From positions 233,105 to 297,104 of the IMG/VR virus record IMGVR_UViG_3300025141_000016: a stretch of 64,000 bases of DNA. One strand, written 5' to 3'. The notes beneath the pieces are model-generated. The model saw nothing but the letters and a program-made list of their open reading frames with translations. It was not told the DNA's origin and made no database searches. The position numbers and the translations under genes are program-made. This document shows, piece by piece, positions 36,725 to 61,872 of this stretch. The number at the start of each line of letters is the position of its first letter. Position 1 is the stretch's first letter.

Positions 36725-38126
36725 TACCAAGTATCGGCCCCGGACCTATGGGGATGTGCTGGGCCAGGATGCCACCGTGGCTGTCCTTCGCCAGTTCGTG
36801 AAGGAGGGAAGGGGGCTTCACCAGTCCTACGTCTTCTGTGGGCAGCACGGATCGGGGAAGACAACCCTCGGTCGTCTTCTTGCTCGGTCGTTGCTGTGTG
36901 AGGCTCCGGTTGAGGGGGCCTCTTGCGACTCCTGTGGGTCGTGCCGGGTGCTTCTCGATGGGGGCACCCACGAGTGTTTTGAGGAACTGGATGCGGCTAC
37001 GAAGTCGGGGAAGGCAGACCTCGCCCGAATCGTTGAAGACGTGACCTACTCCACCTATTCGGGAAAGCGCAGGATCTACCTTTTCGATGAGTCCCATCGC
37101 CTGTCCAAACAGGCCCTCGACGTGCTCTTGAAGCCGATGGAGGACAACGTGTTGGGGTCAGAGGAAAAGCGGCTCGTGTGCATCTTCTGTACCACCGAGC
37201 CAGCCAAGATGGCGAGCACCATCTTCTCGCGCTGTGCCCCGGCCTTCGTGATCCGCCCCGCACCTCTCCCCGAGATTGTGGAACGGTTGACCCATGTTTG
37301 TGGGCAGGAAGGGATTGAGTACGAAGGGGATGCTCTCACTCTCCTCGTGGAGCAGAGTGAGAGCCATATCCGAGATGCCTTGAAGATGGTCGAGGGGGTT
37401 TCGATGCTCGGGGGCATCACCCGGACTAATGCAGCAGCTTACTTGCATCTGGAGGCGAACGAGGAGGTTCTGGGGCTTCTGGAGGCCCTTGGGTCGGACC
37501 TCAACCGTGTGGTGAGCGTTGCCACCTCACTCTCCGAGAGGATGAGCCCGTCGGGGGCCTATGAGCGAGTAGCGGAAGCAGCGATGCTTGTCTACCGGGT
37601 TTACTTGGGGGTTGCCTCAATCCCTACCAAGTGGGATGGTGGTCGGGTGAAGGCCCTGGCAGAGTCGGGGCCGTCTCTTCTCACCGTCGCTTCCCGTTTT
37701 GCTGCCCCACCCCACCGTCCTACGCGGCAGACCTTGATCCTTGACTCGGTTGCCTCCCATCACCTCTACGGGTCCGATGTGGGGGTTTCTGTCGGAGCCC
37801 AGATCGTTGTATCTGCCCCCGCGCCCCCCGTTGCTGCTCCCCCCACCCCCCCACTTGTTTCGGGGGCTTGCTCGGCACTTTCGGAAGGCTCGTCTCCTGA
37901 CCTTGATCCTGTGGGTAATGTCGGTCATGGATCAGACACGCCAACAGCATCAACAACCGCCAACGGGATATGGGTGGACTCCCGAGCGGTGGGTCATGGC
38001 CCTGTTTCGCGGACTGACAAGTCCCAACCCACATCCGATAAAGAATCTCTCTCGTCACCTGTTTTTCGTGAACTGGTACGTCACCATCTCCGAAGGATGA
38101 TGGGTGACCATGGACGTTCGGGATGA
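36714..38126 (+). CDS. dnaX: DNA polymerase III gamma/tau clamp-loader ATPase
   Basis: KYRP..DVLGQ, GQHGSGKTT, C-x-CxxCxxC, ELDAA, FDESH, CTTE, SRC, RDAL. Confidence 0.93.
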   Translation: MALDTKYRPRTYGDVLGQDATVAVLRQFVKEGRGLHQSYVFCGQHGSGKTTLGRLLARSLLCEAPVEGASCDSCGSCRVLLDGGTHECFEELDAATKSGKADLARIVEDVTYSTYSGKRRIYLFDESHRLSKQALDVLLKPMEDNVLGSEEKRLVCIFCTTEPAKMASTIFSRCAPAFVIRPAPLPEIVERLTHVCGQEGIEYEGDALTLLVEQSESHIRDALKMVEGVSMLGGITRTNAAAYLHLEANEEVLGLLEALGSDLNRVVSVATSLSERMSPSGAYERVAEAAMLVYRVYLGVASIPTKWDGGRVKALAESGPSLLTVASRFAAPPHRPTRQTLILDSVASHHLYGSDVGVSVGAQIVVSAPAPPVAAPPTPPLVSGACSALSEGSSPDLDPVGNVGHGSDTPTASTTANGIWVDSRAVGHGPVSRTDKSQPTSDKESLSSPVFRELVRHHLRRMMGDHGRSG

Positions 38127-41819: not shown

Positions 41820-42244
41820 TGACCTACCGTTATTCGTGAAGCGAGGGAGAGGAGCGGTCGCTCCCCCATGAACATCCCCATCCTCCGGGCTTTGACGAGG
41901 AAGACATTGTGGTTGACGAAGAACTGAAAAAGGAAGCCTCCCAAGATCGCCGGATCCTCATCCGTCTCGCCTCCACTCTCCCTGCGGGAGATGGGATGCG
42001 CCGAGCCATCCTGGCTGGGCTCCGACGGAGAGCCGCCAAGGAACCTTGGAAGCACTGGGGGAAGACGCAAAAGGAGATGCTTGGGATAGCCAAGGCCGAG
42101 ATGAAGCGGCTCAATGTCAGGAGCCCAGATGATCTCCGCAAGGCGCGAAAGAAGCATAAGCCCAGTCTCCCGTCCGATGGGTCCAGCGGTCAATATGACG
42201 CTTGGACCGAAACGCTCGCACAGGTCTTGGAGATGGAGGAATGA
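41819..42244 (+). pseudogene. Tag-A gene interrupted by an in-frame TGA at codon 7 (or starting at GTG 41909)
   Basis: TGATG-coupled ATG 41819 is in frame with ORF 41909..42244; single TGA at 41837-41839. Confidence 0.5.
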
Positions 42245-43386
42245 ACCAGCACGAACGAGACAAGAAAGCGTACCTCACCGCGACCCCGATGCAGCGGGAC
42301 GTTGTGCGGCGGCTCTTGACCGACGTGCTTGCCTGTCTCCGTGCCCAATACCTCTCCTACCAGACGAGTCATTGGCAGGTCGTGGGGGGATCGTTCTACG
42401 GAAACCATCTGCTCTTTGATCGGCTGTATCAGTCGGTGCAGGAGCAGGTAGATCAGTTGGCCGAGAAGATCGCCGGATACCTCGGCGGGGATGCCCTTGA
42501 CCTCAACCGTCAAGTGGAGGCCATCTACAACTTTACCCTGGATTGGGGTCGGATCTCTTGCCACCACAAGCGCGGGATTCGTTCGGAGGAGGATCTTCAA
42601 GAAGCAATCAGGGTCGCCTACGAGGGGATCAAGGGTGCCAGGGCTATGACCTTGGGCCTCGATGACTGGCTCATGGCGACTGCGAACTCCCACGAGGAGA
42701 ACACCTACCTGCTTCAACAGACCCTCACGGAACCCCTCACCCAAAAGCAGGCAGGGGATCACCCGATGGTGTCCCATAAAGAGGCCCAGAAGATCGCCAA
42801 AGACCTACTGTCTCGTATCGAGGCCGTGGGGTACTTGGAAGCCTCCATCGCTGCGAAGAAGATGCGAGTGGGAGGGTTTGAGTTCGGGGATCATCGGAGC
42901 GCGATGAAGACCCTAAAGTTTCACGCGAAGGGCACCCTTCCTTTTGGGGTTGAGTCGGCTGCCGAACCACTCCACTGGATCGCCCAGGACGAACTGCAAG
43001 ATTATCAGCGGGTGTTGCGTGTGGCGGAAGGCGCGGCTCGCAAGAAGCGGAAGCGGGGGTCGGGCGCACCGACCGCCGAGGATGCCTTCTACGATGACCC
43101 CGAAAAGAAGGAAGTGCTGGAGTTCTCGCAGTCGAACGCCATCAGCAACAATCCCGAGATTGCCGAGAAAGCGTCGGAACAAGACAACATGGACGTGTCG
43201 GAAGCCAAGGCCGTAGCGGAAGCCGACGAGGCACCCCCTACCCCTGACGAGATCAAGGATGAGCCCGGTGGGGCAGCGTTCTCCACCCTCAACCGGTACG
43301 TCATTCAGACCGAAGTGCCGGGGGAAAAGAAAGTGGTCCAGATGAACAAGGACCGCATGGCACGGTGGTCCGAGGAGTTGCTCTGA
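42241..43386 (+). CDS. Dps/ferritin-like domain fused to further modules
   Basis: HWQVVGGSFYGNHLLFDRLY..DQLAEK Dps motif; KQAG linker. Confidence 0.8.
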   Translation: MNQHERDKKAYLTATPMQRDVVRRLLTDVLACLRAQYLSYQTSHWQVVGGSFYGNHLLFDRLYQSVQEQVDQLAEKIAGYLGGDALDLNRQVEAIYNFTLDWGRISCHHKRGIRSEEDLQEAIRVAYEGIKGARAMTLGLDDWLMATANSHEENTYLLQQTLTEPLTQKQAGDHPMVSHKEAQKIAKDLLSRIEAVGYLEASIAAKKMRVGGFEFGDHRSAMKTLKFHAKGTLPFGVESAAEPLHWIAQDELQDYQRVLRVAEGAARKKRKRGSGAPTAEDAFYDDPEKKEVLEFSQSNAISNNPEIAEKASEQDNMDVSEAKAVAEADEAPPTPDEIKDEPGGAAFSTLNRYVIQTEVPGEKKVVQMNKDRMARWSEELL

Positions 43387-47116: not shown

Positions 47117-50100
47117 ATGGCTTTTCCCGGCTCCGTTTACGCACCTCCCGGTGTCTACACCCAGACTCTTTACGAAGACCCCATCCAGGGCCTCGCCGCC
47201 TCCGTTCGGCTACCCCTCATCATCGGTACAGGTTCCGAGGAACTGTTCCAGACTGCCCTGGAGTTGATCCGAGGCTCCTCCTCCTCTGTTGACCAGCGCG
47301 TCGTACAGGAAGATGAGACGGGTCGCGCAGTTGTCAGCGTCAGCGACACAGGTGTCGTGACCCTGGGCAACTTCGACGGTGACCTCACACGGTTGCAGGT
47401 GAAGAACTACCCCATCGTGAGCGGGCAGGGCACTGGCACTACCGCGACCGACGCGGCTTCGGTCAACGTGACCCTCAATGGAGCCCCGATTGTGGTCCTC
47501 GCCATTGACGGAGCCACTGGCATCTTGACCCTCTCCGTGACCCCAGAGTCCACGGACGAAGTGAAGGTGACCTACTACTTCAACAGGACCGACACCCTCA
47601 TCACCGACACCCTGTCGGACCAGATCAGCCCAGATGCCCCCGAAATCTTCGGTGCCTTGGGCGAGAACTATGTCGTCACCGCAGACGTGAATGACACCCT
47701 GGAGTTCACGGTTGACTCCGAGGACACCGTGAGTGTCACCATCACCGCTTCCCCGGTCACTGGTTGGACGGCGGCACAGGTGGCGACGTTCATCAATGCA
47801 GAGGCAACGGGCACGACCCTCATCGCTTCGACTACCGTTGACAACTTCGGCAACACTGTCCTCCACCTCACCGCAGATCGCGACATTGTGGTTGAGGACG
47901 GCACTTGCAACACCACTCTGGGCCTCACGTCTGCCTACGACACCGCTCGCAACAAGGTCTTCTACACCTTCCAGAGCCCCATCGTAGATGGAAGCGACGG
48001 CGGCGTGACCACAACTGACCCCGCTGATGTGACGGTCAAGGTCGGTGGTACGCAGGTCATCCCGACGGCTGTTGACGGCCAGACGGGTGCTATCACCCTT
48101 CCCTTCGCCCCTGAAACCGGGACAACGGTCACCTGCCAGTATTACTTCAACTCCTGGCAGGACACCTTCGATTATCTCGCGCATCGCGGGATCACCGACA
48201 TTACGCTCTGCGGCCTCACCCCTGACCGTAGCGACTACATCGACGGTGCAGACTTCATCCTGAAGGACGACAAGATCCTGTGGGGCACGAGCACCCTGAC
48301 GGCAGCGGGAACCAACACCGCTGGGTCTACCTACTTTGACGACACCCAGATCAGCACATCGCTGGTGGACACGCGGCAGTATCTCGCAGCGTGCGCGGCT
48401 GTCGTAGACACTTCGGTCACCCCTCCGGTCGAGAACCGCAAGGACTTCACCCTTCCGCTCCAGCCCACTACGGGTAACGGTCGCGACACCCCGCTTGGGG
48501 CCTCGACCTATGCCGAGGTGGCCAACGGTCGTCTGGACCTCCCGACGGATCGTCCTGACCTCGTGTACGCCTACTGGGGATACACCGTCGAGGATGCTCT
48601 CAACCGAGGGCGCGTCGAGGTGACCAAGGTGGATTCGGCCACGAGCCAGATCACCCTGCGTGAGTCGGTTCCTGTGGGAGCCAGCGTCTACGCGACGTTC
48701 TATTACAACACCCTTGTAGACGGGGACTACACCCTGACCAGCGTCACCGCTGGTGCGAGTGGTGTGGGAACCTACTCCATCATGGACGAGAACAGCGTTT
48801 CTCTCCTGACCCCCCAGTTCGGAGCCAAGTCGGCTCTCCTGGCTACGGTCACCGTGGAGTTCCCTTCCGGTTCGGAGCGCACTCCTGATTGCCGCTTTGA
48901 GCCTCCGTTCACGACCACTTCCTTCACAGGTGCGGTCGAGGAGGACGTGACCATCGAGTTCGCGGTGCAGGACGCAACCCTCGCCAAGTACGCGGTGGCA
49001 TCGGCTGGACCGTACTACCCAGTCACCGGAGCGAGCGACAACCTCCTCATCACCCTCGACGGGACTGATCGGACCATCGATCTCAACAACCCGGCACGCA
49101 CGGGGGCAACGCCAGCGTTCGCCAATCCCAAGGGCTTCCGGGCTTCCGTTGTCGGAGACGAGATCGTCTACGACGCGGCGGGCTTCGCCACGGGCACCAT
49201 CACGGTTGGCGGTACTCCCGTAGCGACTACCGCTACCCTGCTCATTGATGGTGTTACGCTCACCGAGCAAGGTGCCACTGGATGGGTCAACGACGCCACC
49301 GTTGACCTAACCGCCACAGCTATTGCTACGGCTATCAATACCTTCGTGACCACAGTGAGTGCGGTCGCCATCGGAAGTGTTGTACACATCACGGCAGCTA
49401 CGGCGGGTACGGCAGGCAACGCCATCGCCACCTCGTCACCGTCTGGTGATCCGGCATTTACGTTCTCGGCTGCCACCCTGGCTGGCGGGACCGTTCTCGG
49501 AACGGCGCTGGCGATCACTGCGGCTACCAATGCCATCGACATGGAACTTGACGGTGGTCTGGGGTCAGCGAAGCTGGTCCAGGCACAGGTCAACGCGGGT
49601 GCAGGCCAGAAAGCCGAGCACATCGTCGCGGCCATCAACCGTGCTGCCCATGGTGAGTTCGGAGCAGCCCTCGGTGGAGGAGCCGCGACCATCATCCTGG
49701 CGGCAGATGCCTCGGACGTAGACGACTACTACGTCGATTGGGAAATCAAGGTCACGGCTGGTCTTGCCGCTGGTGAGAAGAACACCATTACTGCCTACAA
49801 CGGTACGACGAAGGTTGCGACCGTTACAGCTTGGGCTGGTGGTGCCCCGGTCATCACTGACACCTACTATGTCTACGATCCCGACACCTGCCCGAGCATG
49901 ACGGGTGCGACTCGGTTCCTCAATGCCGTTACCATTGGTACGGGCGGCTTTGACGACATTATCCTGTCGTATGTGGGTGCAATCTCTGGTGTGACTGCCA
50001 TCACTACGGCTGCTGTGCCTATCGCGGCGGCTACCTACAACACGGTGGCTGATCTCGTTACCGCTGCCCAGACTGCCATGGACGCAGCCATCACGGCAGC

Positions 50101-52606
50101 GGGCTTCGCAGCGGACACCCTGGAGATCGACGTAAGTGCGGACACCAGTGGTCGGCTTGTCCTGACCATGAAACAGGCACCAGTTGATACCACAGGTGCC
50201 ACGCTGGAAGTCGTGAACAACGCGACTCCCGCCGATGACTTCATGGTTCTGGCGGGTTTCGATGCTGATGCAGTAGGAAACGACCAGACGATTCTGGTGA
50301 GTGGTCCTATCGCTACGGAGATCACCAACCTCACGGCAACCACGACGGGCGTGACCCCATACGACCGGATCTGGATCAGGAACCGTATCTGTCCGGGCAA
50401 CGCCCAGACGGCGACTCACCTGACCGATTCCGAGTTCTGTTTGAGTCAGTGTCAGTTGAAGATGCTGGGCGGAACCGGTGCTGGATTCGCGGGCCTGACG
50501 GCCAACGAGCAGGGCTACGCTGGGATCACCGGCACCATGCAGGCACCCACCCTCTTTGGTGAGGTTGGTCTGGCTGGTGGGCAGGACGCATCTGATGATG
50601 TGGTGGTCGAGTTGTTCGCGGACGGTGGAACGACCGATCAGAACAACATCTTCAAGATGACCTTTGAGGGTGAGCCCATCACCATCGAGTTCACTGACGG
50701 CGCTGGAGCGGCGATTGCTGCTGGCGGTTCGGCTGATGTTCCTCTGGGACCGCTCACTGACGCGAACAGTATCCTCGGCCAGATCGACGCTGCCATGACG
50801 ACTGCGGGAGTCACTGGCACCGTTGCCCAGGAAGGGTGCGGTATCCGTTTCCGTGGTGGGAGCACGGCTGCTGCCGCTTCCATCGTGATCGGAGATGCGA
50901 ACGCCAACGACGTTCTCGGATTCACCGAGGGCGATGTGGCCTACCGGACTGTTGTTGAGACTGAAGTGGTCGTATCCGCCATGATGGCGGCTTTCGACAA
51001 CTGGACGAACGTCGGTGGTATCGCCAAGACGGTCAACGACGAGGCCAACGCCAAGTACCTGTTCATCGAGAGCATGGGTACGGCAGGGCTCGGGACGCTT
51101 TCCTCTGTGGCCTTTGACGACGCGGCTACGGATTCCGCACTCCGTCCGGGTGTTGGGCTCGGTGTGGCTGTGGGAGACGGTAACGCGGGAGAGGCGGCCA
51201 TCGACGGCTTCTTCGTCACTTCGACGGATACCGTCAATGGTTCGGGAACGGCGAACACCTCCATTCTCAACGCTGGCACGGGCCAGGATGGAAATGTGGG
51301 TGAAACCTACCGTGATCTCGTCACTGGGTTCACAGTCTCCGTCCTTCCACGGGCTGGTGGCGGCTCCTACCCCACTGGTGGAACCATCACCTTCACGGTC
51401 AGGGAGAATGTGACCACCGACAGCAACCTGCCGGTGAACACGATTCCTGGCCTGGAACTGACGGTCAGCAACACGTCCGGGGTTGTCGCCGGAGATACGG
51501 CGGTTGTCTCTACCTACGAAAAGGGTGGAAATCAGCCGAGCGTTGGGGATGTGTACTACGTCTCCTACGACTACGCGAAGCAGGATTTCAGTGCTGCGCT
51601 GTTCACCAAGTTGTCCTCCATTCAGGCGGCCTACGGGGCGAACAGTCCGAATAACCCTGTCTCGTTGGCATCGTACTTTGCGGTCCTCAACGGTGCTGTT
51701 CTCCTCTCGGTCAAGCAGGTCCAGAAGGACACTGACTCGACGGGAGATGGGGCTTACGACACAGCCAGTGAAACCGCCTTCATCGCGGCCATTGACGACG
51801 TGGAAGGAACGCTTCCGGGCGGTCTGTACCCCGACATGTTGGTGCCCTTGAAGGGAGATAGCCTGACTCTGTTCCAGTATGTCGCCATGCACTGTGACAT
51901 TCAGTCGAGCATCCGCTACCGCGCAGAGCGTACCGCTATCTGCGGATACGGTGCCGGTACGCAGCCTCGGGACGCGGGAACCATCGCGCAGGCGGTGGGT
52001 CGTTCTCGGTTGCGCCTCATGTACCCGGACATCGCCACGTTGAGCCTTTCTCGGGCTGACGGGACGACCGACTCCTACCTTGTGGATGGCACCTACCTCG
52101 CCGCTGCATGGTCTGGAAATCGGGCTTCCCCGAACATCGACGTTGCTACTCCGTGGACGCGGGGACGCATCTTCGGGTTCGATGAACTCGCTCGGACGCT
52201 CGATGCGGTTCAGCAGAATCAGGTCGCTGTGCGCGGTGTGACGATCTTTGGCCAGCGCCAGAGCATCATCGAGTGCCGTCATGGTCTGACCACTGACATG
52301 ACCAACGTGTTGACGAAGACCCCGACCGTGGTGACCATCGCGGATGAGGTTCAGCGTCAGGCGCGGGCGACTCTCGACAAGTTCATTGGAACGAAGTTCC
52401 TGCCGAGTGTCACGGGTCAGATCGAGGGGCAGTTGGCCAACACCTTGAAGAAGCTGGTCCAGGCATCCATCATCAACGCCTTCACGGGAGTTTCTGCGGC
52501 AGTGTCAGCAGATGACCCCACGGTGGCGGAAGTGGAAGCCTACTACCAGCCCATCTTCCCGCTGCTCTACATCGTCGTGACCTTCAATCTGCGAAGCACA
52601 CTGTAG
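47117..52606 (+). CDS. Contractile tail sheath protein with large insertions
   Basis: N-terminal YAPPGVY; C-terminal sheath domain ending YQPIFPLLYIVVTF; 1829 aa. Confidence 0.88.
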   Translation: MAFPGSVYAPPGVYTQTLYEDPIQGLAASVRLPLIIGTGSEELFQTALELIRGSSSSVDQRVVQEDETGRAVVSVSDTGVVTLGNFDGDLTRLQVKNYPIVSGQGTGTTATDAASVNVTLNGAPIVVLAIDGATGILTLSVTPESTDEVKVTYYFNRTDTLITDTLSDQISPDAPEIFGALGENYVVTADVNDTLEFTVDSEDTVSVTITASPVTGWTAAQVATFINAEATGTTLIASTTVDNFGNTVLHLTADRDIVVEDGTCNTTLGLTSAYDTARNKVFYTFQSPIVDGSDGGVTTTDPADVTVKVGGTQVIPTAVDGQTGAITLPFAPETGTTVTCQYYFNSWQDTFDYLAHRGITDITLCGLTPDRSDYIDGADFILKDDKILWGTSTLTAAGTNTAGSTYFDDTQISTSLVDTRQYLAACAAVVDTSVTPPVENRKDFTLPLQPTTGNGRDTPLGASTYAEVANGRLDLPTDRPDLVYAYWGYTVEDALNRGRVEVTKVDSATSQITLRESVPVGASVYATFYYNTLVDGDYTLTSVTAGASGVGTYSIMDENSVSLLTPQFGAKSALLATVTVEFPSGSERTPDCRFEPPFTTTSFTGAVEEDVTIEFAVQDATLAKYAVASAGPYYPVTGASDNLLITLDGTDRTIDLNNPARTGATPAFANPKGFRASVVGDEIVYDAAGFATGTITVGGTPVATTATLLIDGVTLTEQGATGWVNDATVDLTATAIATAINTFVTTVSAVAIGSVVHITAATAGTAGNAIATSSPSGDPAFTFSAATLAGGTVLGTALAITAATNAIDMELDGGLGSAKLVQAQVNAGAGQKAEHIVAAINRAAHGEFGAALGGGAATIILAADASDVDDYYVDWEIKVTAGLAAGEKNTITAYNGTTKVATVTAWAGGAPVITDTYYVYDPDTCPSMTGATRFLNAVTIGTGGFDDIILSYVGAISGVTAITTAAVPIAAATYNTVADLVTAAQTAMDAAITAAGFAADTLEIDVSADTSGRLVLTMKQAPVDTTGATLEVVNNATPADDFMVLAGFDADAVGNDQTILVSGPIATEITNLTATTTGVTPYDRIWIRNRICPGNAQTATHLTDSEFCLSQCQLKMLGGTGAGFAGLTANEQGYAGITGTMQAPTLFGEVGLAGGQDASDDVVVELFADGGTTDQNNIFKMTFEGEPITIEFTDGAGAAIAAGGSADVPLGPLTDANSILGQIDAAMTTAGVTGTVAQEGCGIRFRGGSTAAAASIVIGDANANDVLGFTEGDVAYRTVVETEVVVSAMMAAFDNWTNVGGIAKTVNDEANAKYLFIESMGTAGLGTLSSVAFDDAATDSALRPGVGLGVAVGDGNAGEAAIDGFFVTSTDTVNGSGTANTSILNAGTGQDGNVGETYRDLVTGFTVSVLPRAGGGSYPTGGTITFTVRENVTTDSNLPVNTIPGLELTVSNTSGVVAGDTAVVSTYEKGGNQPSVGDVYYVSYDYAKQDFSAALFTKLSSIQAAYGANSPNNPVSLASYFAVLNGAVLLSVKQVQKDTDSTGDGAYDTASETAFIAAIDDVEGTLPGGLYPDMLVPLKGDSLTLFQYVAMHCDIQSSIRYRAERTAICGYGAGTQPRDAGTIAQAVGRSRLRLMYPDIATLSLSRADGTTDSYLVDGTYLAAAWSGNRASPNIDVATPWTRGRIFGFDELARTLDAVQQNQVAVRGVTIFGQRQSIIECRHGLTTDMTNVLTKTPTVVTIADEVQRQARATLDKFIGTKFLPSVTGQIEGQLANTLKKLVQASIINAFTGVSAAVSADDPTVAEVEAYYQPIFPLLYIVVTFNLRSTL

Positions 52607-52719: not shown

Positions 52720-54150
52720 ATGCCTACCTTCACCTCTGATGATCGCAAGATTCTGGTCCGGTACGCCTCGACGCTGCCCTCCGGGTCGCCGGAGCGGAAG
52801 GCTGTTTTGGCGGGTCTTTCCCTGACTGGTTCCGGTTCCGGTGCTGCAAACGCGAAGTATCTGGACAGCCTGCCCTCTGGCACGAAGGCCAAGATTCTGA
52901 AGAACGTGGCCAAGCATTATGGTGTCTCCGTCTCCGAGATCGAGGACGAACTGACAGATCGGGATGCAGAAGCCCTGTATGAGTACATCGCAAACGACAA
53001 TGCCTTGCGGATGCAGGTTTACCGCGACTTCAAGCAGCAGCGGTTGGCTGCAAGCAAGAACGCTGCCGGATACGCCCGTAAGTCCATGCGTGGGGGAGAC
53101 TACGGAGGGGCTGGGAGCAGCAAGCAGTTGGTGAAGGACATGATTGCCAACATGCGACGGGTGAAGACCAACGCTGAACGAAGCCATGCCGTTGAGCAGG
53201 TGCAGCACGCGGAAGCTGCGAAGTCCATCACCTCCCAACAGGCCAAAGAGGTCATGGGAGCCATTGGTAAGACCGCATCGGCCCGTACCGCCGAGGACTG
53301 GATGGAAGACGCGGTGAAGCGCCCTGGTCGCCTTCACAAGTTCTTCGGTATCCCCGAGGACGAGACGATCCCCATGTCGAAGATCGACGGTGAGATCGCC
53401 AAGTTGAAGAAGAAAGACGACCGCACGAAGGACGAGGAGTCCCTGCTCGATGCCCTCAACCTGGGCAAGACCTTCAAGGAAATGAAGAAGTCGGCTGCGG
53501 GAGAGGAACACTACATCGGGGACGAGGAAGCGGGGGTGTACTGGAGCGTCGATGAAACCCCTCGCGGATGGTTCGTCCAGGCTTGGGTGGATGGTGGTCA
53601 CTTCACACATGACTTCCCGAAGGATGGTCCTTACCCCACCGAAGGGGAAGCCATGGAAGCTGGATGGTCACAAGGGCTTGAATGGGTGGTGACCAACGAT
53701 GTGAGCCTTGCGGGCGAACCCAAGACCTTCCCCGCCTGGGCTCGCAGGAACAGATGGCAGCCTCGCACAGCCTCCTCCGATGATCGCATCGCTCTCATCC
53801 GCTACGCCTCTACCCTTCCTGTGGGGTCAGATGAGCGCAAAGCCATCCTGTCGGGGTTGAAGACTGCTGCCCTTGATTCCGTGTCTCTCGGTGAGATGAT
53901 GGTGTCGGCGGCAGCCCAGGCTCGGCTGTTCTATCGCCTTGACATGAAGCGGTTTGTGGGTGTGTACGAGGAAGTGGGTCAGAATCTTATCCGAATCGGG
54001 CATACCTCTGACCCCGATGACCGTGCGTTCCTTGTCAGCGAGGTCGATAAGGGGCTGGCCGATTTGAAGAAGCACAACATCACCGCTATGTCGGAGGCGT
54101 TGGAGCACATGACCCGTGCCTACGCACTCGTTTCCAAAGCGTATCGCTGA
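52720..54150 (+). CDS. Tag-A polyprotein with about five small modules
   Basis: Two tag-A copies; RLAA, KTAS-ARTA, KSAA, RTAS, KTAA linkers. Confidence 0.75.
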   Translation: MPTFTSDDRKILVRYASTLPSGSPERKAVLAGLSLTGSGSGAANAKYLDSLPSGTKAKILKNVAKHYGVSVSEIEDELTDRDAEALYEYIANDNALRMQVYRDFKQQRLAASKNAAGYARKSMRGGDYGGAGSSKQLVKDMIANMRRVKTNAERSHAVEQVQHAEAAKSITSQQAKEVMGAIGKTASARTAEDWMEDAVKRPGRLHKFFGIPEDETIPMSKIDGEIAKLKKKDDRTKDEESLLDALNLGKTFKEMKKSAAGEEHYIGDEEAGVYWSVDETPRGWFVQAWVDGGHFTHDFPKDGPYPTEGEAMEAGWSQGLEWVVTNDVSLAGEPKTFPAWARRNRWQPRTASSDDRIALIRYASTLPVGSDERKAILSGLKTAALDSVSLGEMMVSAAAQARLFYRLDMKRFVGVYEEVGQNLIRIGHTSDPDDRAFLVSEVDKGLADLKKHNITAMSEALEHMTRAYALVSKAYR

Positions 54151-55403
54151 TGGCTCGACGTACTGCCAAGGCTGATGTGACCCCGGTTCGACAGCGGACC
54201 CAGTACACCTGCATGAGCACCTCCCTGATGATGTGCCTCCAGGCCCTTGGGTACGACGTTGACGAGGATGAGGTCAACAAGGTCATGGGCGCACGTCCCA
54301 TGAAGGGTGCAGCGTGGGAGCAGGCTCTTGCCGCTGCCCAGCACTTCGGAGTCCGAGGAACACTCGTGACCCCTTCGACTGTGCGGCAGTTGAAGGAATG
54401 GACCGACGCGGGCAAGCCCGTGATGATCGCCTGGAATCCCGAGGGTCGAGAGTGGTCACACGCCAGCGTCGTCTTCGACGTGACCCCGTGCAAGGAACAT
54501 GGGTTCGACGTTCATGTCGCTGACCCCAACATCCCTGACCCCGACGAGACAGTCCGGGTCATGCCCAAGTCCGAGTTCTACAAGAAGTGGTACGAGAAGT
54601 GGCCGAACTACTTGGTTCGCCGTCCCGCTCTCATGCTGGACCGGGAGATCACTCCTGATGGTCGTCAGGTGATGGCCTTCAAGAAAGCATCCTCTCGTGG
54701 CTGGGAGAAAACCATCGCTTCTTGGAGCAAGGAGTACAAGACCCCAGAGGGGAAGGTTTTAGGGACCGTGGTTATCGACCGGGGCAAGGTCAACTGGAGG
54801 CCGAACCAGTTGATTGAGGGTTTCGTTCGTCCGCAGGTCATCAGTCGTTCCCGAAGTGGGGAAGAAATCCCCAGTAACGAGAAACTGACCTCTGTGGCAG
54901 ATGCCTGGGTGCGGAAGAACCATGGGAGACAAGTCATGGCTTCCGGTTCCGCTGACCCCAGCCGGGTGGCGGCCAGATATGCCTCGCGCTGTGCCAGTGG
55001 GGATAAAGCCCTCTGGGCGGGTCGGCGCAAGCCCACTTCCGGGGAAGTGGAATGGGCGAAGAATGCCAAGTGGCAGGATTGGGAGCCGCACCCACTCCCC
55101 GATGACCTCACCAAGTTTTTCAAGCGCACCCCAGATACGATTGAGGTGGGTCTTTCCGAGATCACCCCAATCCGGGCTCGGGAGAAAGGCATCGCTAACG
55201 CCAACCGATTCATGTGGTTGGCGTACTGGGGGAAGATGCCCCGGCGAAAGCCCATTTCGTTGAGAGAAAACGATGACGGCACCTACACCATCCTTGATGG
55301 GAACTCGACCTATGCCAACGCCAAGATGAGTGGGTGGAGACACATGTGGGGTCGAGTTGAAGAGTCCCCCTCTACAACGCGGCTATCGCGGAGGATCCCA
55401 TGA
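54150..55403 (+). CDS. Tag-B polyprotein: C39-like peptidase + unknown + ParB/Srx-like domain
   Basis: RQRTQYTC..SHASVV..VADP; KPI..YTILDGNSTY..GW; ADPSRVAARY. Confidence 0.72.
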   Translation: MARRTAKADVTPVRQRTQYTCMSTSLMMCLQALGYDVDEDEVNKVMGARPMKGAAWEQALAAAQHFGVRGTLVTPSTVRQLKEWTDAGKPVMIAWNPEGREWSHASVVFDVTPCKEHGFDVHVADPNIPDPDETVRVMPKSEFYKKWYEKWPNYLVRRPALMLDREITPDGRQVMAFKKASSRGWEKTIASWSKEYKTPEGKVLGTVVIDRGKVNWRPNQLIEGFVRPQVISRSRSGEEIPSNEKLTSVADAWVRKNHGRQVMASGSADPSRVAARYASRCASGDKALWAGRRKPTSGEVEWAKNAKWQDWEPHPLPDDLTKFFKRTPDTIEVGLSEITPIRAREKGIANANRFMWLAYWGKMPRRKPISLRENDDGTYTILDGNSTYANAKMSGWRHMWGRVEESPSTTRLSRRIP

Positions 55404-56911
55404 ACTTTACTGCCTCTACCTTACGTCTTGCGTCCCTGCGGGTTGCCTTTCACCACCTCAATGCTGAATGGCACCGCATCGCGAAGCCCAAATACTTGAA
55501 GACGCTTGATTGGATGCTGGGGTTGATCCGGTCCTTCGACAAGGACGGCTACCAGATTTCTGCCGACCTCTCCAATAGGAACATGCTGCGCCGGGTCATT
55601 CGTATGAGGCAAGCGGTTCAGGATGGGTTCGATCTTGCCCTGCTCATCGAAAATGACGAGATCATGGAGGGGGCTGGAGCCAAGGCTATGGGGCGGCTCC
55701 AGAAAGCTGTGAAGGAGCAGGCTCAACTCCAGCCCACCGATACCGATCTTGCTGCGTTTGTGAAGACCTACGCAGACAAGGAGGACGGTGCGCGGCGTAC
55801 CCAAGGGGAGTTTTTCAAGAAGCTGATTGCCAAAGAACTGGAACTTGGGAAAGAGGAAGTCGCCAACATGGATACGCTCGTGATGAGCGACAGGCCATTC
55901 TTTGATGCGTGCTTCAATGTCGTCAACCAGTACGTCAATGCACGGAAGAACAGGGTGGCTTCAGCCCTGTCGTCGGCTCCCGGTGAGTTCAAGATGCGGG
56001 ACAAGGCAAACACCTCAACGTGGAACAAGAGTCGGAGGGGGAAGAAACCACGCGCTTTCTACTATCTGGGTGACCTCTTGGGGTGTATGTCCGTCACCAC
56101 TTCTATCCCTGACATGGCTCATGCGTGTGAGGTGGCACAGTCTTCCATCAAGATCATCGCCAAGGACAATAAGTACCTCGATACGCAGGGTGGCTACAAC
56201 GCCGTCCACTACGCGCTCCTCGTTGACAAACTCGTCGTGGAGTATCAGGTGAAGGCGAAGGTGAGTGCCATGGAGGCTGCTATCTCCCATGATCTTGTCC
56301 ATGACGACGACAAGTTCCGGGCGAAGTTCAAGCCTACAACGAGCGCCCCCGAGGGTCGTATCCCTCTGTCTTCCGCCGAGAAAGACATGGTAAAGCGTGT
56401 GATAGACATTTCCACGCAACTCACCATGCGGGACTTTGAGCAGGCGTTTGACCTCGGGCTGATGACAGGGGGGCAGCCTATTGACCCCACCGATCTCCTT
56501 TATGGTGAAGGCTTGTCTCCCGAAGAACTCAAAGAGCGCATCCACATGGCCAGCCTCCGCATGGCTCGGTACTACCGTTTCTGGGAACCCCGGTTCGGTG
56601 GGGCCAAGGTGGGCGGCCATGACCCCTACGAGTTCTACGAGGGGATCTCTCCGCAACACCCGCCCCCAGGTGGCTGGGCGAAGTGGGAGGCCGAGGAGAA
56701 ACGGGAGGCCGAGCGGAAGGAGAAGAAGCTGCACAAGGACGTGGCCCAGTGGATGCGTCGGAACGCGAGGGGCAAGAACATCTACGAACTCATCGACGCA
56801 GCGGTCATGCACTTCGGCCTCCGTCGGCCCGATGGCTATGCCTACGATGGCGGCGAAGGCCCGAGGTGGGTCCACGTCCTGGCCGACAAATACCACAGAC
56901 CCTACGACTGA
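55400..56911 (+). CDS. RelA/SpoT-like nucleotidyltransferase (small alarmone synthetase-like) with tag-B-like leader
   Basis: RDKANTSTWNK (RxKxxxSxxxK), DLLG, GYNAVH, EYQVK, AAISH. Confidence 0.7.
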   Translation: MNFTASTLRLASLRVAFHHLNAEWHRIAKPKYLKTLDWMLGLIRSFDKDGYQISADLSNRNMLRRVIRMRQAVQDGFDLALLIENDEIMEGAGAKAMGRLQKAVKEQAQLQPTDTDLAAFVKTYADKEDGARRTQGEFFKKLIAKELELGKEEVANMDTLVMSDRPFFDACFNVVNQYVNARKNRVASALSSAPGEFKMRDKANTSTWNKSRRGKKPRAFYYLGDLLGCMSVTTSIPDMAHACEVAQSSIKIIAKDNKYLDTQGGYNAVHYALLVDKLVVEYQVKAKVSAMEAAISHDLVHDDDKFRAKFKPTTSAPEGRIPLSSAEKDMVKRVIDISTQLTMRDFEQAFDLGLMTGGQPIDPTDLLYGEGLSPEELKERIHMASLRMARYYRFWEPRFGGAKVGGHDPYEFYEGISPQHPPPGGWAKWEAEEKREAERKEKKLHKDVAQWMRRNARGKNIYELIDAAVMHFGLRRPDGYAYDGGEGPRWVHVLADKYHRPYD

Positions 56912-56976: not shown

Positions 56977-57558
56977 ATGTCCAAAGTCGTTTCAGCCCAG
57001 GCCCCCTTCACGATGATTGTGGCCACTCTCACGCAGGGTAGCGACCCTTCATTGGGGCCTGCGGGCAACCCGAATGTCTCCCGGCAGACTGTCACCATGC
57101 AGTATTTCCCCGAGATCCCTGTCCCTGGTGGTCCGAACACCAACAACATCCCGTCTGCGAAGGGGGTCACTACCCATCTGGGGAACCTTGCGTACCCTGG
57201 TGCTGGGGGTGCTGTCCGAGCAACGGGAACGATTACGGTTGCGAGTGCCACCTTTCAGGGGCCGACCTCGATTCTCTTGGGGGAGTACATCATCACCTCG
57301 GATGAGCACTACACGGTTGATCCTGTCAGCGTGAACAACACGGCCACTGCGCTTGCCGCAGCCATCGACGCACTCCCAGAATACGCGGCTACCCCAGCGG
57401 GAGCCGTTGTGTCGATCAGTGGGCTTATCGGACCCCAGGGGAACATGGAAGTCTTCCGGTCAGTTGGTGTGAGTCCTGCCAACTTCACCCTGGCTCCGAC
57501 GGGTGGGGTCATGTCTGGAGCCGAGCCGGTTATCGGACCTATCACTTCAACGCCGTAG
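56977..57558 (+). CDS. Probable virion protein sharing a module with the tail sheath
   Basis: ATGTITV..TATALAAAI..GAVVSI matches a sheath insert; class I promoter. Confidence 0.6.
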   Translation: MSKVVSAQAPFTMIVATLTQGSDPSLGPAGNPNVSRQTVTMQYFPEIPVPGGPNTNNIPSAKGVTTHLGNLAYPGAGGAVRATGTITVASATFQGPTSILLGEYIITSDEHYTVDPVSVNNTATALAAAIDALPEYAATPAGAVVSISGLIGPQGNMEVFRSVGVSPANFTLAPTGGVMSGAEPVIGPITSTP

Positions 57559-57566
57559 GGGGGACC

Positions 57567-58256
57567 ATGGGAGCGAAGATGCGCCAGAGCAGGGCCGACC
57601 GTGAGTATATCCTTGGCGCTCTCCCCTCTGGGGTTCGGCGGGTTCAGGTTATCGACGGGTCGGGAAAGCAGGTTTACAAGCGGCCTGATGACGTGGACCT
57701 CATGGCTGATGAGATCGTCCTTTCCAATGACGGCTCCCCCATCGTCATGCGAGGCAAGCCAGGACGGAAGCCCAAGTCACAGTTGGTTCCTGTGAGCCCA
57801 CAGGTTGCGGAAGTGAGCAAGGCTCGGGGCGAACACATCGACCATGACCTCCTGCGTCGTGAGGCCGAGAAAGACGCGGAAGGCGATGGGGTCATCAACC
57901 GTTTGATCCTGGCGATGGCCGAGGAAGCGGCTGCCATCGAGTTTGAGCGAGAGGAAGCTGGTCGTCATGGCCAGGACACCACGAACCACTCCGCGAAAAG
58001 GGCTCGTATCCTCAAAGGGATGGCAGACACTTGGTTGAAGCGCAAGCAAACCATGGAAGGGGGTATTGTCGATCTGGACAGCCCTGCTTTCCAGGGCTTG
58101 TTCTCCTTCATCTTGGAGACATTCAAGGAAGCGATGACCGAGGTTGGCTCGCGTCCCGAGTTCGTTGAGACAGTTTTTACGAAGTTGGTCGTTGTGCTGG
58201 CAGATGATCCCTGGAAACAGGAGGCCAAGGCCCGGATGCGGGATAAACTCCGGTGA
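57567..58256 (+). CDS. Hypothetical helical protein
   Basis: ORF in the late operon. Confidence 0.65.
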   Translation: MGAKMRQSRADREYILGALPSGVRRVQVIDGSGKQVYKRPDDVDLMADEIVLSNDGSPIVMRGKPGRKPKSQLVPVSPQVAEVSKARGEHIDHDLLRREAEKDAEGDGVINRLILAMAEEAAAIEFEREEAGRHGQDTTNHSAKRARILKGMADTWLKRKQTMEGGIVDLDSPAFQGLFSFILETFKEAMTEVGSRPEFVETVFTKLVVVLADDPWKQEAKARMRDKLR

Positions 58257-58264
58257 GGTGAACG

Positions 58265-59671
58265 GTGCCAACCAATGTAGTCAAGACACCAGCCGATGAG
58301 AAGAAGTGGGAGAAGGCCAAGGCCCGTGCGAAAGAGCAGGGGAAGGCCGAGAACTATGCCTACATCATGGGCATCTACAAGCAGATGAACCCCGAGAGGT
58401 TCAAGTCAGCCCAGCGGGTCACCGCCCGGTTTCGCGATGAGGACTATGTAGACCTGCTCCAGAGGAAAATCTCCCTAAAGGAGTTCCTCAAAAAGCACCC
58501 CAAGATCAAAGCAGTTGACACCCAACGACTCGATGCCCTGCCGGAAAGCGGATTGTCCAGAGGGTACGACTACGATTGCTTTGTCCATGCAGAACTGCGA
58601 GCCGTCCAGTTGAGCGAAGCCAAATCCTACCGAGAGGTAGACTGGGAACCCATCGGACTCGACGGTGCCGGGGCCAACCCACCCAGAGGAGCCGGGATCC
58701 CGTGGAGTGAGGCCAAGAAAGGGGACTGGGTTCGGTGGCCCGGACTCGGAGGCCATCACGGCGTGGTCATTGACCCCAACCGGAAGATTGTAGAGAGTTG
58801 TTGGGGCTACAAAGGCACCGTGTTCCAGCACCCGGTTGACTACCATCCCTACGGAGGCGGTGGTGAGGTTTTCCCCGTGCGCCCCAAAGTATCAGCCCAG
58901 CGGGTCGCCGCCAGATACGCAGCACAGCTTCCTTTGATGGACCCCCTCTACAACCTGCGGGAAGCCGCCAAGGAACTGCTCTTGCTGGAGGACCATCTGG
59001 GTCATGCCCAGAAGCACTGTCCTGACTGCATCCGTAAACATCTGCTCACCACGGAGGCACTGCTTGAAGAAGCAGTGCGCCTCGACACAGAAGGGGAGAT
59101 GTTGGGGTTGCTCTCACCGCTTCCGGCACAGGTACGGGAACTGTGGACAGCCTATCAAGATGGTCGCCCGGAGCATGAGATCGGGCAAGCCGCCCGTGTT
59201 TTGCGTAAGGGACTCGTAGAGGCTTCCGCCGATGTTCGTGTGGCTGCCCAGGCTGCAAAGCAGGGGAAGTATGCCTACATCATGGGGATCTACAAGGGCA
59301 TGAACCCCAAGGCTTCTGCTTCTAAGGTTGCTGTACGGTACTTGACGGCTCGGATGTCTTCAAAGATACGAAGAGCCATAGCGAAGTGGTACAAGAAAGA
59401 GAAATACACTTCGGAGCTTTATCCTGGATCCTACAAGCACAAGTGGAACAAGGAAAACCACCCGGATGTCTTGGAGAAGCGATTCAACAAGATGTATCGG
59501 GGTTTCGGAGGGGACCAGAGAGAACACTTCGCAACCAAGGTGTTGGACTACTACGAACACCCAAGCTGGGCTCGGGGGTACGAAATCTTGGCGCAAGCGT
59601 GGGAAGATACGGATCGCTACTTCAACGAACCGGTGGAAGATCCAGACCCTTACGACGAGGAGGACTACTAA
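58265..59671 (+). CDS. Tag-B polyprotein including an NlpC/P60-papain-like domain
   Basis: Three tag-B copies, duplicated YAYIMGIYKxMNP, domain paralogous to 12075..13097. Confidence 0.75.
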   Translation: MPTNVVKTPADEKKWEKAKARAKEQGKAENYAYIMGIYKQMNPERFKSAQRVTARFRDEDYVDLLQRKISLKEFLKKHPKIKAVDTQRLDALPESGLSRGYDYDCFVHAELRAVQLSEAKSYREVDWEPIGLDGAGANPPRGAGIPWSEAKKGDWVRWPGLGGHHGVVIDPNRKIVESCWGYKGTVFQHPVDYHPYGGGGEVFPVRPKVSAQRVAARYAAQLPLMDPLYNLREAAKELLLLEDHLGHAQKHCPDCIRKHLLTTEALLEEAVRLDTEGEMLGLLSPLPAQVRELWTAYQDGRPEHEIGQAARVLRKGLVEASADVRVAAQAAKQGKYAYIMGIYKGMNPKASASKVAVRYLTARMSSKIRRAIAKWYKKEKYTSELYPGSYKHKWNKENHPDVLEKRFNKMYRGFGGDQREHFATKVLDYYEHPSWARGYEILAQAWEDTDRYFNEPVEDPDPYDEEDY

Positions 59672-60033
59672 TGGCTGCAACCCCCTATGCCTACAACGCC
59701 TATGTCGTATCGGTTTACGATGGTGACACCATCACCGTCATTCTCGATATGGGAATGGGGGTGCAGAAGAAAGCCAAATGTCGAATGTACGGCATCGACA
59801 CCCCGGAAATCCGTGGCAAGACGGTTCGAGAAAAGACCGCAGCCAAAGTCGCCAGGGATCGCTTGCGAGAGCTCGTCAACGAGAAGACGGTACTCATCCA
59901 GTCCCTTACCAAGCCCGACAAGTACGGAAGGCTGCTGGTAAAAGTGTGGATCGATGACACCTACATCAACGACCTTCTAATCGAAGAAGGGTTGGCGAGA
60001 GCCTACGATGGTGGAAAGAAGAGTCCTTGGTAG
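59671..60033 (+). CDS. Thermonuclease (SNase-like)
   Basis: VYDGDTI, RMYGIDTPE, DKYGRLL, EGLA; TAATG-coupled start. Confidence 0.9.
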   Translation: MAATPYAYNAYVVSVYDGDTITVILDMGMGVQKKAKCRMYGIDTPEIRGKTVREKTAAKVARDRLRELVNEKTVLIQSLTKPDKYGRLLVKVWIDDTYINDLLIEEGLARAYDGGKKSPW

Positions 60034-60577: not shown

Positions 60578-60871
60578 CTATGCTTCCCCAATGGCTTCTT
60601 CGTTAAGAACACACCCGATAAAGGTGTCCAACAATTCTCGGAGTCGAACCATCTCGGTCAAGGGCATCCGTCGGAGATCATGCACCGTATTTTCGGGCAA
60701 GACCAAGAAGTGAACCCCAGCTTCATCTGCGTTTTCTTCCAGGACATGTTGAAGAAATGCACGTCGCTCATCGGAAAGTCCTTCACACACCTCAACAAGC
60801 ACCAAATCTCCTTCCTGAACCTTGACAGGAAGAATGTTGGATACCTCATTGACTCGTGTGGGTGGGCTCAT
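60578..60871 (-). CDS. Hypothetical protein
   Basis: ATGA-coupled to the actin-like gene. Confidence 0.6.
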   Translation of the reverse strand: MSPPTRVNEVSNILPVKVQEGDLVLVEVCEGLSDERRAFLQHVLEENADEAGVHFLVLPENTVHDLRRMPLTEMVRLRELLDTFIGCVLNEEAIGEA

Positions 60872-61872
60872 TCTTCGTACTCTTGAACAGCTTGAATGAG
60901 CAATCCTTGAGCAACCGCGTTCAATGGATCACCCGCTTGACGGATTTCTGAGATCTCAAATGGGAACTTCCGCTTCTTCTTAGCGAAGACCTTCTCAAAG
61001 AACGGTAGGAAGTTTCCAGCCATCGAAGTGCCGCCACTCACAATAATCGGGATTGGTTTGGGGAGGGCGAAACGATCCTTGATCTTGATGAATTCCTTGG
61101 CCACCTGATCAATACAGTATTCAACCAAGCTCTTGTAATAGAGCACCAGTGCTTCTTCTTCCCGATTCTGAGGGTCTATAAGGTCAATGCCTTTTTCCTT
61201 CGTAGCGCACATGCGGCTCTTTGTTGAACCCATTGCTTTAGCAGCCCCAGCATCGATCCAATCCCCACCCCGAGCCACCGAAAAGGACATACCTTCCACT
61301 CCGGAAACACTCAGGGCGATGTTGCACATACCCGAACCGAAGCTGATACCCAGACCGGAAAAGCCTTCGGCGGCTGTTTCTGAATAGATGATGGCCATCG
61401 CTTCGTTGGAAGGGTAAGCCTCATAGCCGCACTCTTCTACAATTCGTTCGAAGACCCCTTGATGGTAAACCACATCCCGATCCGCATCCACAGGAGCGGC
61501 AGGCACGCTGAAGAAGCAAATCTCGTTCGCTTCTGCCGGTTCCCCCAAAACATTCTTTACCAGGACACCAAGTACGGAAAGAGCATCCATCTCGCCGGCT
61601 GCCACCAAACCTTGTGACAGGGGGCGGCGCGCTTCACGACCGAACACATTCGCCATTTCCATAGCGGCATCGCCTACGACGATGATTCCATCATCGCCAT
61701 GGTCAATGAACTGAACCCCGCTAAGCTTCAGCATCTTTTTCGCTCCGGAGTCCAAATCCAGAAAAGCATCCCGAATACGGGAAGTTTCGACTTTGGTTCC
61801 CTTACGGCGCGCCGAAACCAAATTCATAGTTCCGACATCCAAACCTACACCTAATGTCTTTTTACCAGCCAT
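60868..61872 (-). CDS. Actin-like ATPase (MreB/MamK superfamily)
   Basis: GLDVGT (phosphate 1), NEAMA, SFGSG (phosphate 2), IIVSGGTS (adenosine), PLNAVAQG. Confidence 0.85.
   Translation of the reverse strand: MAGKKTLGVGLDVGTMNLVSARRKGTKVETSRIRDAFLDLDSGAKKMLKLSGVQFIDHGDDGIIVVGDAAMEMANVFGREARRPLSQGLVAAGEMDALSVLGVLVKNVLGEPAEANEICFFSVPAAPVDADRDVVYHQGVFERIVEECGYEAYPSNEAMAIIYSETAAEGFSGLGISFGSGMCNIALSVSGVEGMSFSVARGGDWIDAGAAKAMGSTKSRMCATKEKGIDLIDPQNREEEALVLYYKSLVEYCIDQVAKEFIKIKDRFALPKPIPIIVSGGTSMAGNFLPFFEKVFAKKKRKFPFEISEIRQAGDPLNAVAQGLLIQAVQEYEE

Follow-up and report, generated by a model that had tools for sequence, protein, structure and literature searches.

The linear virus record IMGVR_UViG_3300025141_000016 from IMG/VR is 297,104 bp long, and its last 64 kb (positions 233105-297104, ~60% GC, hereafter the window, in whose numbering coordinates are given unless marked as genome positions) contain a 503-residue open reading frame (ORF) that encodes a divergent relative of the RelA/SpoT-type synthetases, termed here the RSH-like protein (RSH, RelA/SpoT homologue). 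The major head protein of the record (294 residues, phrog_2522 match 9e-55) finds its nearest matches in LR745208.1, a 485-kb uncultured phage (83%), in Tunturiibacter phage Tunturi_5 (50%) and in Bacillus phage G (41%), which places the source among the huge phages that resemble phage G. The phage itself is uncultured; many marine metagenome runs, dated between 2017 and 2025, contain the RSH-like gene, an identical protein was found on 3 contigs, and relatives of the protein were found only in metagenome assemblies, with none among GenBank phages or IMG/VR. Completeness of the record is estimated at 67%, and all genome-wide absences given below are absences from these 297 kb only.

The RSH-like gene, its family and its fold

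Two features support the start of the ORF: a Shine-Dalgarno sequence, GGAGGA, lies at 55390-55395, and the start codon overlaps the upstream stop codon as ATGA. Five segments of the protein can be distinguished, among them two copies of a short peptide tag that is shared with other proteins of the phage and is described in the following section. The features are as follows.

55400-56911, plus strand: RSH-like ORF, 503 residues, ATG start, stop codon included
55430-55459, plus strand: N-terminal tag ASLRVAFHHL (residues 11-20), an isolated low-confidence helix in the model (residues 7-23)
55481-55894, plus strand: family-specific, all-helical N-terminal region (residues 28-165), conserved in 43 of 43 members
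55895-56467, plus strand: RelA/SpoT-type synthetase (pyrophosphokinase) catalytic domain (residues 166-356), with a profile and fold match to RelQ
55997-56029, plus strand: RxKxxxSxxxK motif, here RDKANTSTWNK (residues 200-210), with R200, K202, S206 and K210 for donor-ATP phosphate binding; aligns with RvK...K of RelQ
56072-56089, plus strand: DLLGCM (residues 225-230), with the Mg-binding Asp D225 and G228 retained and M230 for the canonical Arg of DxxGxR, by alignment
56189-56212, plus strand: G-loop GGYNAVHY (residues 264-271), containing Y266, the Tyr that stacks on the acceptor; GYrSyH is the aligned stretch in RelQ
56240-56257, plus strand: EYQVKA (residues 281-286), the counterpart of EIQIRT, by alignment
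56549-56581, plus strand: second tag ASLRMARYYRF (residues 384-394), closing the conserved core on its C-terminal side, by alignment
56597-56908, plus strand: C-terminal extension of ~100 residues after the second tag (residues 400-503), without counterpart in the nearest orthologues (402-403 residues)

Together with SHDL at residues 296-299, all RSH motifs stand in canonical order. An original prediction, made from the sequence alone, had proposed a divergent RelA/SpoT-type nucleotidyltransferase at this place; the ORF and its motifs were confirmed where it had put them, and profile and fold agree with the assignment, as described below.

A word-indexed search recovered 15 homologues that are 34-81% identical to the window protein, most of them with a precomputed match to PF04607 (RelA_SpoT), and one was named ppGpp synthetase/RelA/SpoT-type nucleotidyltransferase by its source. 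When sequences were scanned singly, PF04607 was matched by 15 of 16 with a best value of 4.8e-9, the sole exception being the window protein, and a PF04607 search of the whole record gave no match. Weak AbiEii and rad25 matches of the window protein were dismissed as noise. An exhaustive HMMER search among 1.84 billion representatives showed that the family is small, with 42 clusters. A profile of the catalytic domain built from 42 sequences was then compared with solved structures, and it matched RelQ/YjbM (6.2e-11), RelP/YwaC (2e-10), RelA (1.8e-8) and M. tuberculosis Rel (8.8e-8), followed by CapRel (3.6e-5) and FaRel2 (2.4e-4), with the catalytic motifs aligned in the RSH matches. The full-length family profile gave no RSH match in PDB; RSH structures were recovered by the catalytic-domain profile only.

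The fold leads to the same assignment. An AlphaFold2 (AF2) model computed from 43 sequences has a predicted local distance difference test score (pLDDT) of 80.7 overall and above 90 for residues 120-340, and its best 50 Foldseek matches in PDB are all RSH synthetase domains. In VIA, model residues 169-353 superpose on Bacillus subtilis SAS1/RelQ (5dec_B) with Z 12.6 and a root-mean-square deviation of 3.1 A over 168 residues, whereas unrelated nucleotidyltransferases reach Z ~6. Among RSH effectors, VIA gave Z 11.7 for CapRel (model residues 138-358), 9.4 for Tas1 and 6.3 for FaRel2. The nucleotidyltransferase fold, the absence of which would have spoken against the original prediction, is thus present, and membership in the RSH superfamily is settled at the level of the family, through relatives, profile and fold.

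The two ends of the protein are less familiar. The helical N-terminal region carries the conserved residues D37, R65, R70, G76, F120, Q135 and D164 across the 43 members; modelled by itself, it has a pLDDT of 84.5 and a predicted template modelling score of 0.42. A comparison of this region with PDB found no fold match (Foldseek E >= 3.3; best VIA Z 6.8, helical hairpins only), and for want of any structural match the readings as a decayed HD hydrolase or as some other known fold were rejected. At the other end, short homologues of 381-404 residues stop right after the second tag. The C-terminal extension of the window protein is modelled with a pLDDT of 65-86, has no paralogue in the genome and gave no informative match in the protein atlas. 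All together, the ORF is an intact member of a small, phage-borne and highly divergent branch of RSH synthetases.

Gene string and peptide tag

Counted from the tail sheath gene at its head, the RSH-like gene takes fourth place in a string of genes on one strand whose frames overlap or abut. Its neighbours are listed here.

47117-52606, plus strand: tail sheath, 1829 residues, heading the module; phrog_2839 2e-24 over residues 1473-1825
52720-54150, plus strand: VP2-like basic protein, encoded immediately behind the sheath gene; PF25632 1.1e-7; position conserved in relatives
54150-55403, plus strand: C39-like cysteine peptidase (residues 9-126), then a tag (residue 272), then a C-terminal part that reads as ParB-like; PF13529 2.3e-8; translationally coupled to the RSH-like gene
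56977-58256, plus strand: two conserved downstream genes of 193 and 229 residues, syntenic in all close relatives, without family match
58265-59671, plus strand: 468-residue protein with three tags (residues 51, 213 and 354), in the same gene string
59671-60033, same strand: SNase homologue, PF00565 1.1e-14, its start overlapping the stop of the 468-residue triple-tagged gene

The order sheath, VP2-like protein, C39, RSH, ~191 residues and ~228 residues recurs in five metagenomic relatives. The C39-like gene always lies directly upstream of the RSH gene in loci L001, L003, L006 and L007, and in one further relative (homologue P0014, L005:10001-12343) the two are fused into a single polypeptide of 780 residues. 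LR745208.1 has a short C39 homologue and no RSH gene, and Tunturi_5 has neither; because of this patchy occurrence among relatives, the RSH gene is regarded as accessory. A scan of 46.5-60.6 kb for sigma-70 promoters and terminators found nothing above the shuffled expectation.

Some properties of the neighbouring proteins can be noted in their own right. The sheath is unusually large, with only its last ~350 residues matching the sheath family and the remainder being rich in Thr, Ala and Gly, with a faint DUF2460 match. The VP2-like protein holds two copies of a ~27-residue motif, (S)DDRxxLxRYASTLPxGSxERKAxLxGL, at its N-terminus and near residue 345, and the L005 orthologue begins with a similar stretch; this motif looks like a relative of the tag. 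In the C39-like protein, the Q/C/H/D-type positions read as intact, which makes it a candidate processing peptidase or wall hydrolase, and the ParB-like stretch after its tag reads ILDGNSTYANAK.

The tag itself follows the pattern [RK]V[AT]xR[YFH]. Counted genome-wide in open frames of >=150 residues, it occurs 30 times against 1.28 +/- 1.2 in shuffled sequences, where the maximum was 7. True copies lie in the long frames of ~17 proteins, nearly all on the plus strand and usually behind a Ser/Ala-rich stretch, as in ASASRVAARY, and they stand near the N-terminus (first 15 residues) or at internal junctions of large proteins, a 1519-residue protein having as many as five. A repeat at the DNA level was considered and rejected, since the codons vary freely; conservation is therefore at the level of the peptide. 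The RSH-like protein carries a slightly degenerate copy at residues 11-20 and another at residues 384-394, both of which are isolated low-confidence helices in the model, and the N-terminal R-[VI]-A-x-x-[YHF] is retained in most of the 43 family members, the most distant ones included. LR745208.1 is also enriched in the tag (11 against 1.0 expected), whereas Tunturi_5 is not (2 against 1.15). The tagged setting that had been proposed for the RSH-like gene is thus real, in the form of a genome-wide peptide tag common to this protein and ~17 others.

The domains found in tagged proteins are ADP-ribosyltransferases (ART) of the ART-PolyVal type (two proteins, 9.5e-12 and 1.2e-10), GNAT, ParB-like and ParB C-terminal domains (4e-8 and 4e-30), the 1519-residue protein with five tags being ParB-like, and further a weak NUDIX match, the C39-like peptidase and RSH. 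Three tagged genes follow the head protein gene at a distance of ~5 kb. The copies in the window and the main tagged proteins outside the gene string are given below.

1149-1166, 12135-12152, 13050-13067, 54963-54980, 55439-55456, 58415-58432, 58901-58918 and 59324-59341: tag copies in the window
222-2144 (full ORF at genome 231505-235248): tagged 1247-residue protein, ART-PolyVal 9.5e-12, three tags, straddling the window start
Genome 195141-196478: second tagged ART-PolyVal protein, 445 residues
Genome 128323-130137: tagged protein with a weak NUDIX match
Genome 107008-107574: tagged protein with a GNAT acetyltransferase match

No tag was found in the scanned replication and nucleotide-metabolism proteins of the window. 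These ordinary huge-phage genes for replication and metabolism comprise matches to a class II ribonucleotide-reductase-like fragment (6601-8631, minus strand), a clamp loader similar to DNA polymerase III delta' (36693-38126), a RecD2-like helicase (19973-22228) and a ferritin-like protein (42202-43386), the last one being untagged as well. Near the contig end, on the opposite strand and in a region of lower GC content (~50-53%), 60868-61872 (minus strand) encodes an actin-fold protein with a Pfam Volactin match of 1.7e-76 over its full length. ARAGORN found no tRNA genes in the 297-kb record, while the relative Tunturi_5 has ~42; such genes may lie in the roughly one third of the genome that is missing.

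Catalysis, acceptor and place of action

Seven positions, namely K202, K210, D225, L226, K255, E281 and Q283, are invariant in the 43 family members, and R200, G228, Y266, Y271 and H297 are at least 90% conserved. Counted singly, R200 is kept in 42 members, S206 in 38, G228 in 41 and Y266 in 41, with F in the other two, while position 270 holds H in 26 members and N in the other 17. Two deviations had originally been taken to indicate an altered substrate or loss of activity. The first one, EYQVKA in place of EIQIRT, is the family consensus, K285 being present in 38 of the 43, and therefore the K-for-R exchange says nothing particular about the window copy. The second one, DLLGCM in place of DxxGxR, is a real deviation with Met for Arg, but it fails as a sign of lost activity, as Met recurs at this position (35 members have R, the two nearest orthologues among them, 7 have M and 1 has T). 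In RelSeq the donor-ATP adenine is sandwiched between R269, the canonical Arg of this motif, and R241, the Arg of the RxK motif (PMC7983052), and the equivalent R95 of FaRel2 also contacts adenine in the acceptor site (PMC11782079). Altered substrate or nucleotide handling is thus possible, because the missing Arg is one of the two that clamp the donor-ATP adenine, and M230 may change nucleotide affinity or preference. In the proposed mechanism, ATP-Mg would be bound through R200, K202, S206, K210, D225 and E281, and a purine that stacks on Y266 would receive its beta,gamma-pyrophosphate at the 3'-OH. Judged from these residues and from the history of position 230 given below, the protein is likely to be catalytically active.

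With moderate confidence, we read the gene as encoding an active, tagged RSH enzyme that is probably delivered to the host or used against it. The enzyme is co-translated with the C39-like peptidase from the conserved string behind the sheath gene, and the tagged effectors would be loaded into the virion, delivered with the DNA, and act on the nucleotide pool or the translation of the next host. The tags would then be an address or processing label for dispersed effectors of the polyvalent-protein type. For the RSH-like protein itself, packaging and injection come close to an even prospect. A wider reading is rather unlikely: the tag would be a cargo-address or processing code of a marine clade of huge phages related to phage G, marking host-modifying enzymes for loading into the particle; the whole RSH family would be ancestrally tagged and injected; and the Met clamp and the acceptor side would reflect a donor or acceptor unlike those of known alarmone synthetases. 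As part of the same reading, such a loading code would cover ADP-ribosyltransferases, GNAT, ParB-like nucleases, the cysteine peptidase and the RSH pyrophosphokinase, and would be modular and reusable at domain junctions, while otherwise doing the work of the T4 capsid-targeting sequence or of encapsulin loading peptides. A NUDIX enzyme, which the tagged protein with the weak NUDIX match may be, might break down products of the alarmone type.

Several observations weigh against an active enzyme directed at the host. The window protein itself matched 0 Pfam families at E <= 1 and gave no meaningful match in PHROG, NCBIfam or PADLOC, and it lacks the canonical adenine-clamp Arg. The M230 lineage is young (end branch 0.065), and selection after the change is not separately measurable. 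Distant family members (30-37% identity; P0021, P0036 and P0024) are solo genes beside a thymidylate kinase, a Macro domain and small genes, and the cultured relative Tunturi_5 has neither the tag enrichment nor the RSH gene. Finally, no immunity gene was found, which would be awkward for a toxic enzyme expressed late.

Either an alarmone-type nucleotide or the 3' end of a tRNA could serve as the acceptor. Ahead of the G-loop, the sequence has two residues fewer than RelQ and RelP and no counterpart of the Lys in P-K-x-N-G-Y, and toxSAS enzymes that target translation have a smaller positive patch on the acceptor side together with an N-terminal region for tRNA recognition (PMC11782079); these features loosely fit such a reduced patch. 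A variant of the explanation above, which differs from it in the substrate alone, would have the enzyme use the 3' CCA end of host tRNA in the manner of FaRel2, CapRel and PhRel2, with the helical N-terminal region serving for tRNA recognition. The missing Lys, H or N at position 270, and the alignment of CapRel over model residues 138-358 with Z 11.7 all suggest this variant, but the catalytic-domain profile is nearer to the nucleotide-using RelQ and RelP (6e-11 and 2e-10) than to CapRel and FaRel2 (4e-5 and 2e-4), and the N-terminal region is not markedly basic (net charge 0 here, family median +4). We consider a tRNA acceptor possible, though doubtful.

Another explanation is a non-packaged intracellular enzyme, made during infection to interfere with host nucleotide signalling, with the stringent response or with a host defence system, in which case the N-terminal R-V-A-x-x-[YH] helix would either be built into the family's proteins or serve as another signal, for instance for a chaperone, a protease or localisation. 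This agrees with P0021, P0036 and P0024, which are stand-alone proteins of 333-355 residues without a sheath or C39 neighbour and still keep the N-terminal motif. However, in the window clade the gene belongs to a conserved string that begins immediately behind the tail sheath gene, tagged genes lie beside the head gene, and the same tag is found on ART-PolyVal, GNAT and ParB-like proteins, which constitute the injected polyvalent repertoire of the literature; a purely intracellular role is accordingly unlikely.

The enzyme might also be dead, with M230 abolishing the binding of donor ATP and the protein being kept as a structural or binding component. The canonical Arg is indeed half of the adenine sandwich (PMC7983052), and the window protein is alone among 16 close homologues in having no PF04607 match. 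On a maximum-likelihood tree computed with column 230 left out, however, the seven occurrences of M230 need seven changes, each of them independent, so that Met, and almost only Met, has arisen in six other lineages; these are old (end branches 0.56-1.78) and keep all other catalytic residues, as does the window protein. The M230 codon is ATG where the two nearest orthologues have AGG, a single-step AGG-to-ATG change. At 56088 a ~95%-identical marine variant (run X5) reads G, which gives AGG and Arg, while an independent near-identical sample (run X3) reads ATG, and the Met allele was seen in at least 3 samples; the variant and the independent sample together indicate that M230 is recent and is not an assembly error. 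Decay after such a recent change might not show yet, but in comparison with the nearest orthologue dN/dS (the ratio of non-synonymous to synonymous substitution rates) is 0.12 for the whole gene and 0.09 for residues 191-310, the most conserved part with the catalytic residues, and the end branch of the window protein is short (0.065) and not lengthened. The gene is under purifying selection and is selectively maintained. We read Met as a tolerated, recurrent substitute in the clamp, by comparison of the family sequences, and a pseudoenzyme is improbable. The loss of activity that had been suspected is thus not borne out, given the consensus EYQVKA, the invariant E281 and Q283, the seven independent changes to Met and the purifying selection.

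Least probable is a PhRel/toxSAS-like toxin, part of a toxin-antitoxin or superinfection-exclusion module in which a neighbouring gene supplies the neutralising antitoxin: RSH toxins of such modules occur in phages (PMC7229694), and the conserved 193- and 229-residue downstream genes have no family match, but the gene lies in a string of at least seven genes in the structural region and not in a bicistron, distant members are solo, neighbouring genes showed no HD, HD_4 or other recognised antitoxin or immunity domain in Pfam (SAH/HD hydrolase, pseudo-Zn-finger, Tis1/IapK-like or Panacea), PADLOC reported nothing relevant, and HD and HD_4 are absent from the whole 297-kb record, in line with the earlier remark that no hydrolase antitoxin is evident nearby. 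Small inhibitors of an unrecognised kind may nevertheless exist.

Relation to known systems and meaning

The housekeeping small alarmone synthetases RelQ/SAS1 and RelP/SAS2 give the best profile and structural matches and share the motif order and the catalytic residues. The identity is only ~15%, however, and the protein described here adds the 140-residue N-terminal helical region, the tags and the C-terminal extension, has M for the clamp Arg, K for R in EIQIRT and a shorter stretch before the G-loop without the Lys of P-K-x-N-G-Y, and belongs to a phage instead of a cell. The toxSAS enzymes FaRel, FaRel2, PhRel2 and CapRel and the type VI secretion effector Tas1/Apk1 are, like the proposed effector, conflict effectors with an RSH fold, and CapRel, Tas1 and FaRel2 were recovered structurally. 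Unlike in these systems, no antitoxin or immunity partner and no pseudo-Zn-finger was found here, the gene is not part of a two-gene module, and the sequence is farther from them than from RelQ and RelP.

For the tag, the nearest parallels are the capsid-targeting sequence of phage T4, carried by its internal proteins and Alt, and the cargo-loading peptides of encapsulins, which are short and often N-terminal peptides that serve for loading. In common with them, the tag is a short peptide shared by unrelated proteins of one virus, several of which modify the host. The pattern [RK]V[AT]xR[YFH] resembles neither of the two, and the tag also occurs internally, in up to five copies per protein and at domain junctions.

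Polyvalent proteins of phages were described in 2017 as combinations of ART, GNAT, ParB, peptidase and RelA/SpoT modules, inferred to be packaged, injected together with the DNA and processed by peptidases (Iyer, Burroughs, Anand, de Souza and Aravind, 2017, PMC5512222), and fusions of RelA/SpoT with MuF domains were noted in the same study (PMC5512222). More recently, the MuF-Apk2 toxins of temperate phages were found to make (p)ppApp, with the immunity genes IapK and Aph1 lying alongside (PMC12226406; PMC12691689). The viral structural neighbours of our AF2 model include RelA/SpoT domains in proteins of ~1000-1300 residues from uncultured phages, some of them annotated as DdrB-like or ART-PolyVal-like, and one neighbour in AlphaFold DB is a protein with an extracellular contractile injection system (eCIS) core domain. 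The phage studied here resembles these systems in that an RSH synthetase domain accompanies virion-type genes and ART, GNAT, ParB and peptidase domains, and in the proposed delivery of the effector with DNA. It differs in that the synthetase is a separate gene and effectors, mostly separate or loosely fused, are linked by a short tag and not by covalent fusion. The window protein has one recognisable enzymatic domain plus the extension, P0014 joins the C39 peptidase, further domains and RSH in its 780 residues, and the tagged proteins of 1247 and 1519 residues are multi-module. No MuF domain (PF04233) was matched in the record at E <= 1, nor were immunity genes of the IapK or Aph1 type found; the peptidase is C39-like and not a zincin metallopeptidase, and the extra N-terminal helical region and a clamp polymorphic for R and M set the protein apart. 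Given these precedents, the original view of a packaged alarmone-type enzyme as an unusual way to reprogram the host was overstated, with RelA/SpoT domains in polyvalent and MuF proteins since 2017 (PMC5512222) and MuF-Apk2 already characterised (PMC12226406). The idea of such an enzyme is not new; what is new is the tag system and this RSH branch.

Phage RelA/SpoT enzymes have been known as toxins of toxin-antitoxin modules and as modules of MuF and polyvalent proteins, few of which have been assayed. The branch described here adds a new architecture, with a helical N-terminal region and no immunity gene found, and its natural R/M polymorphism at the donor-adenine clamp makes the effect on nucleotide use directly testable. 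If the tag is indeed a signal for loading or processing, it would provide a sequence rule that predicts which proteins of uncultured huge phages are delivered to the host, and, as a loading signal, it would offer a handle to load foreign proteins into such capsids, in which case the tag would be weightier than the enzyme.

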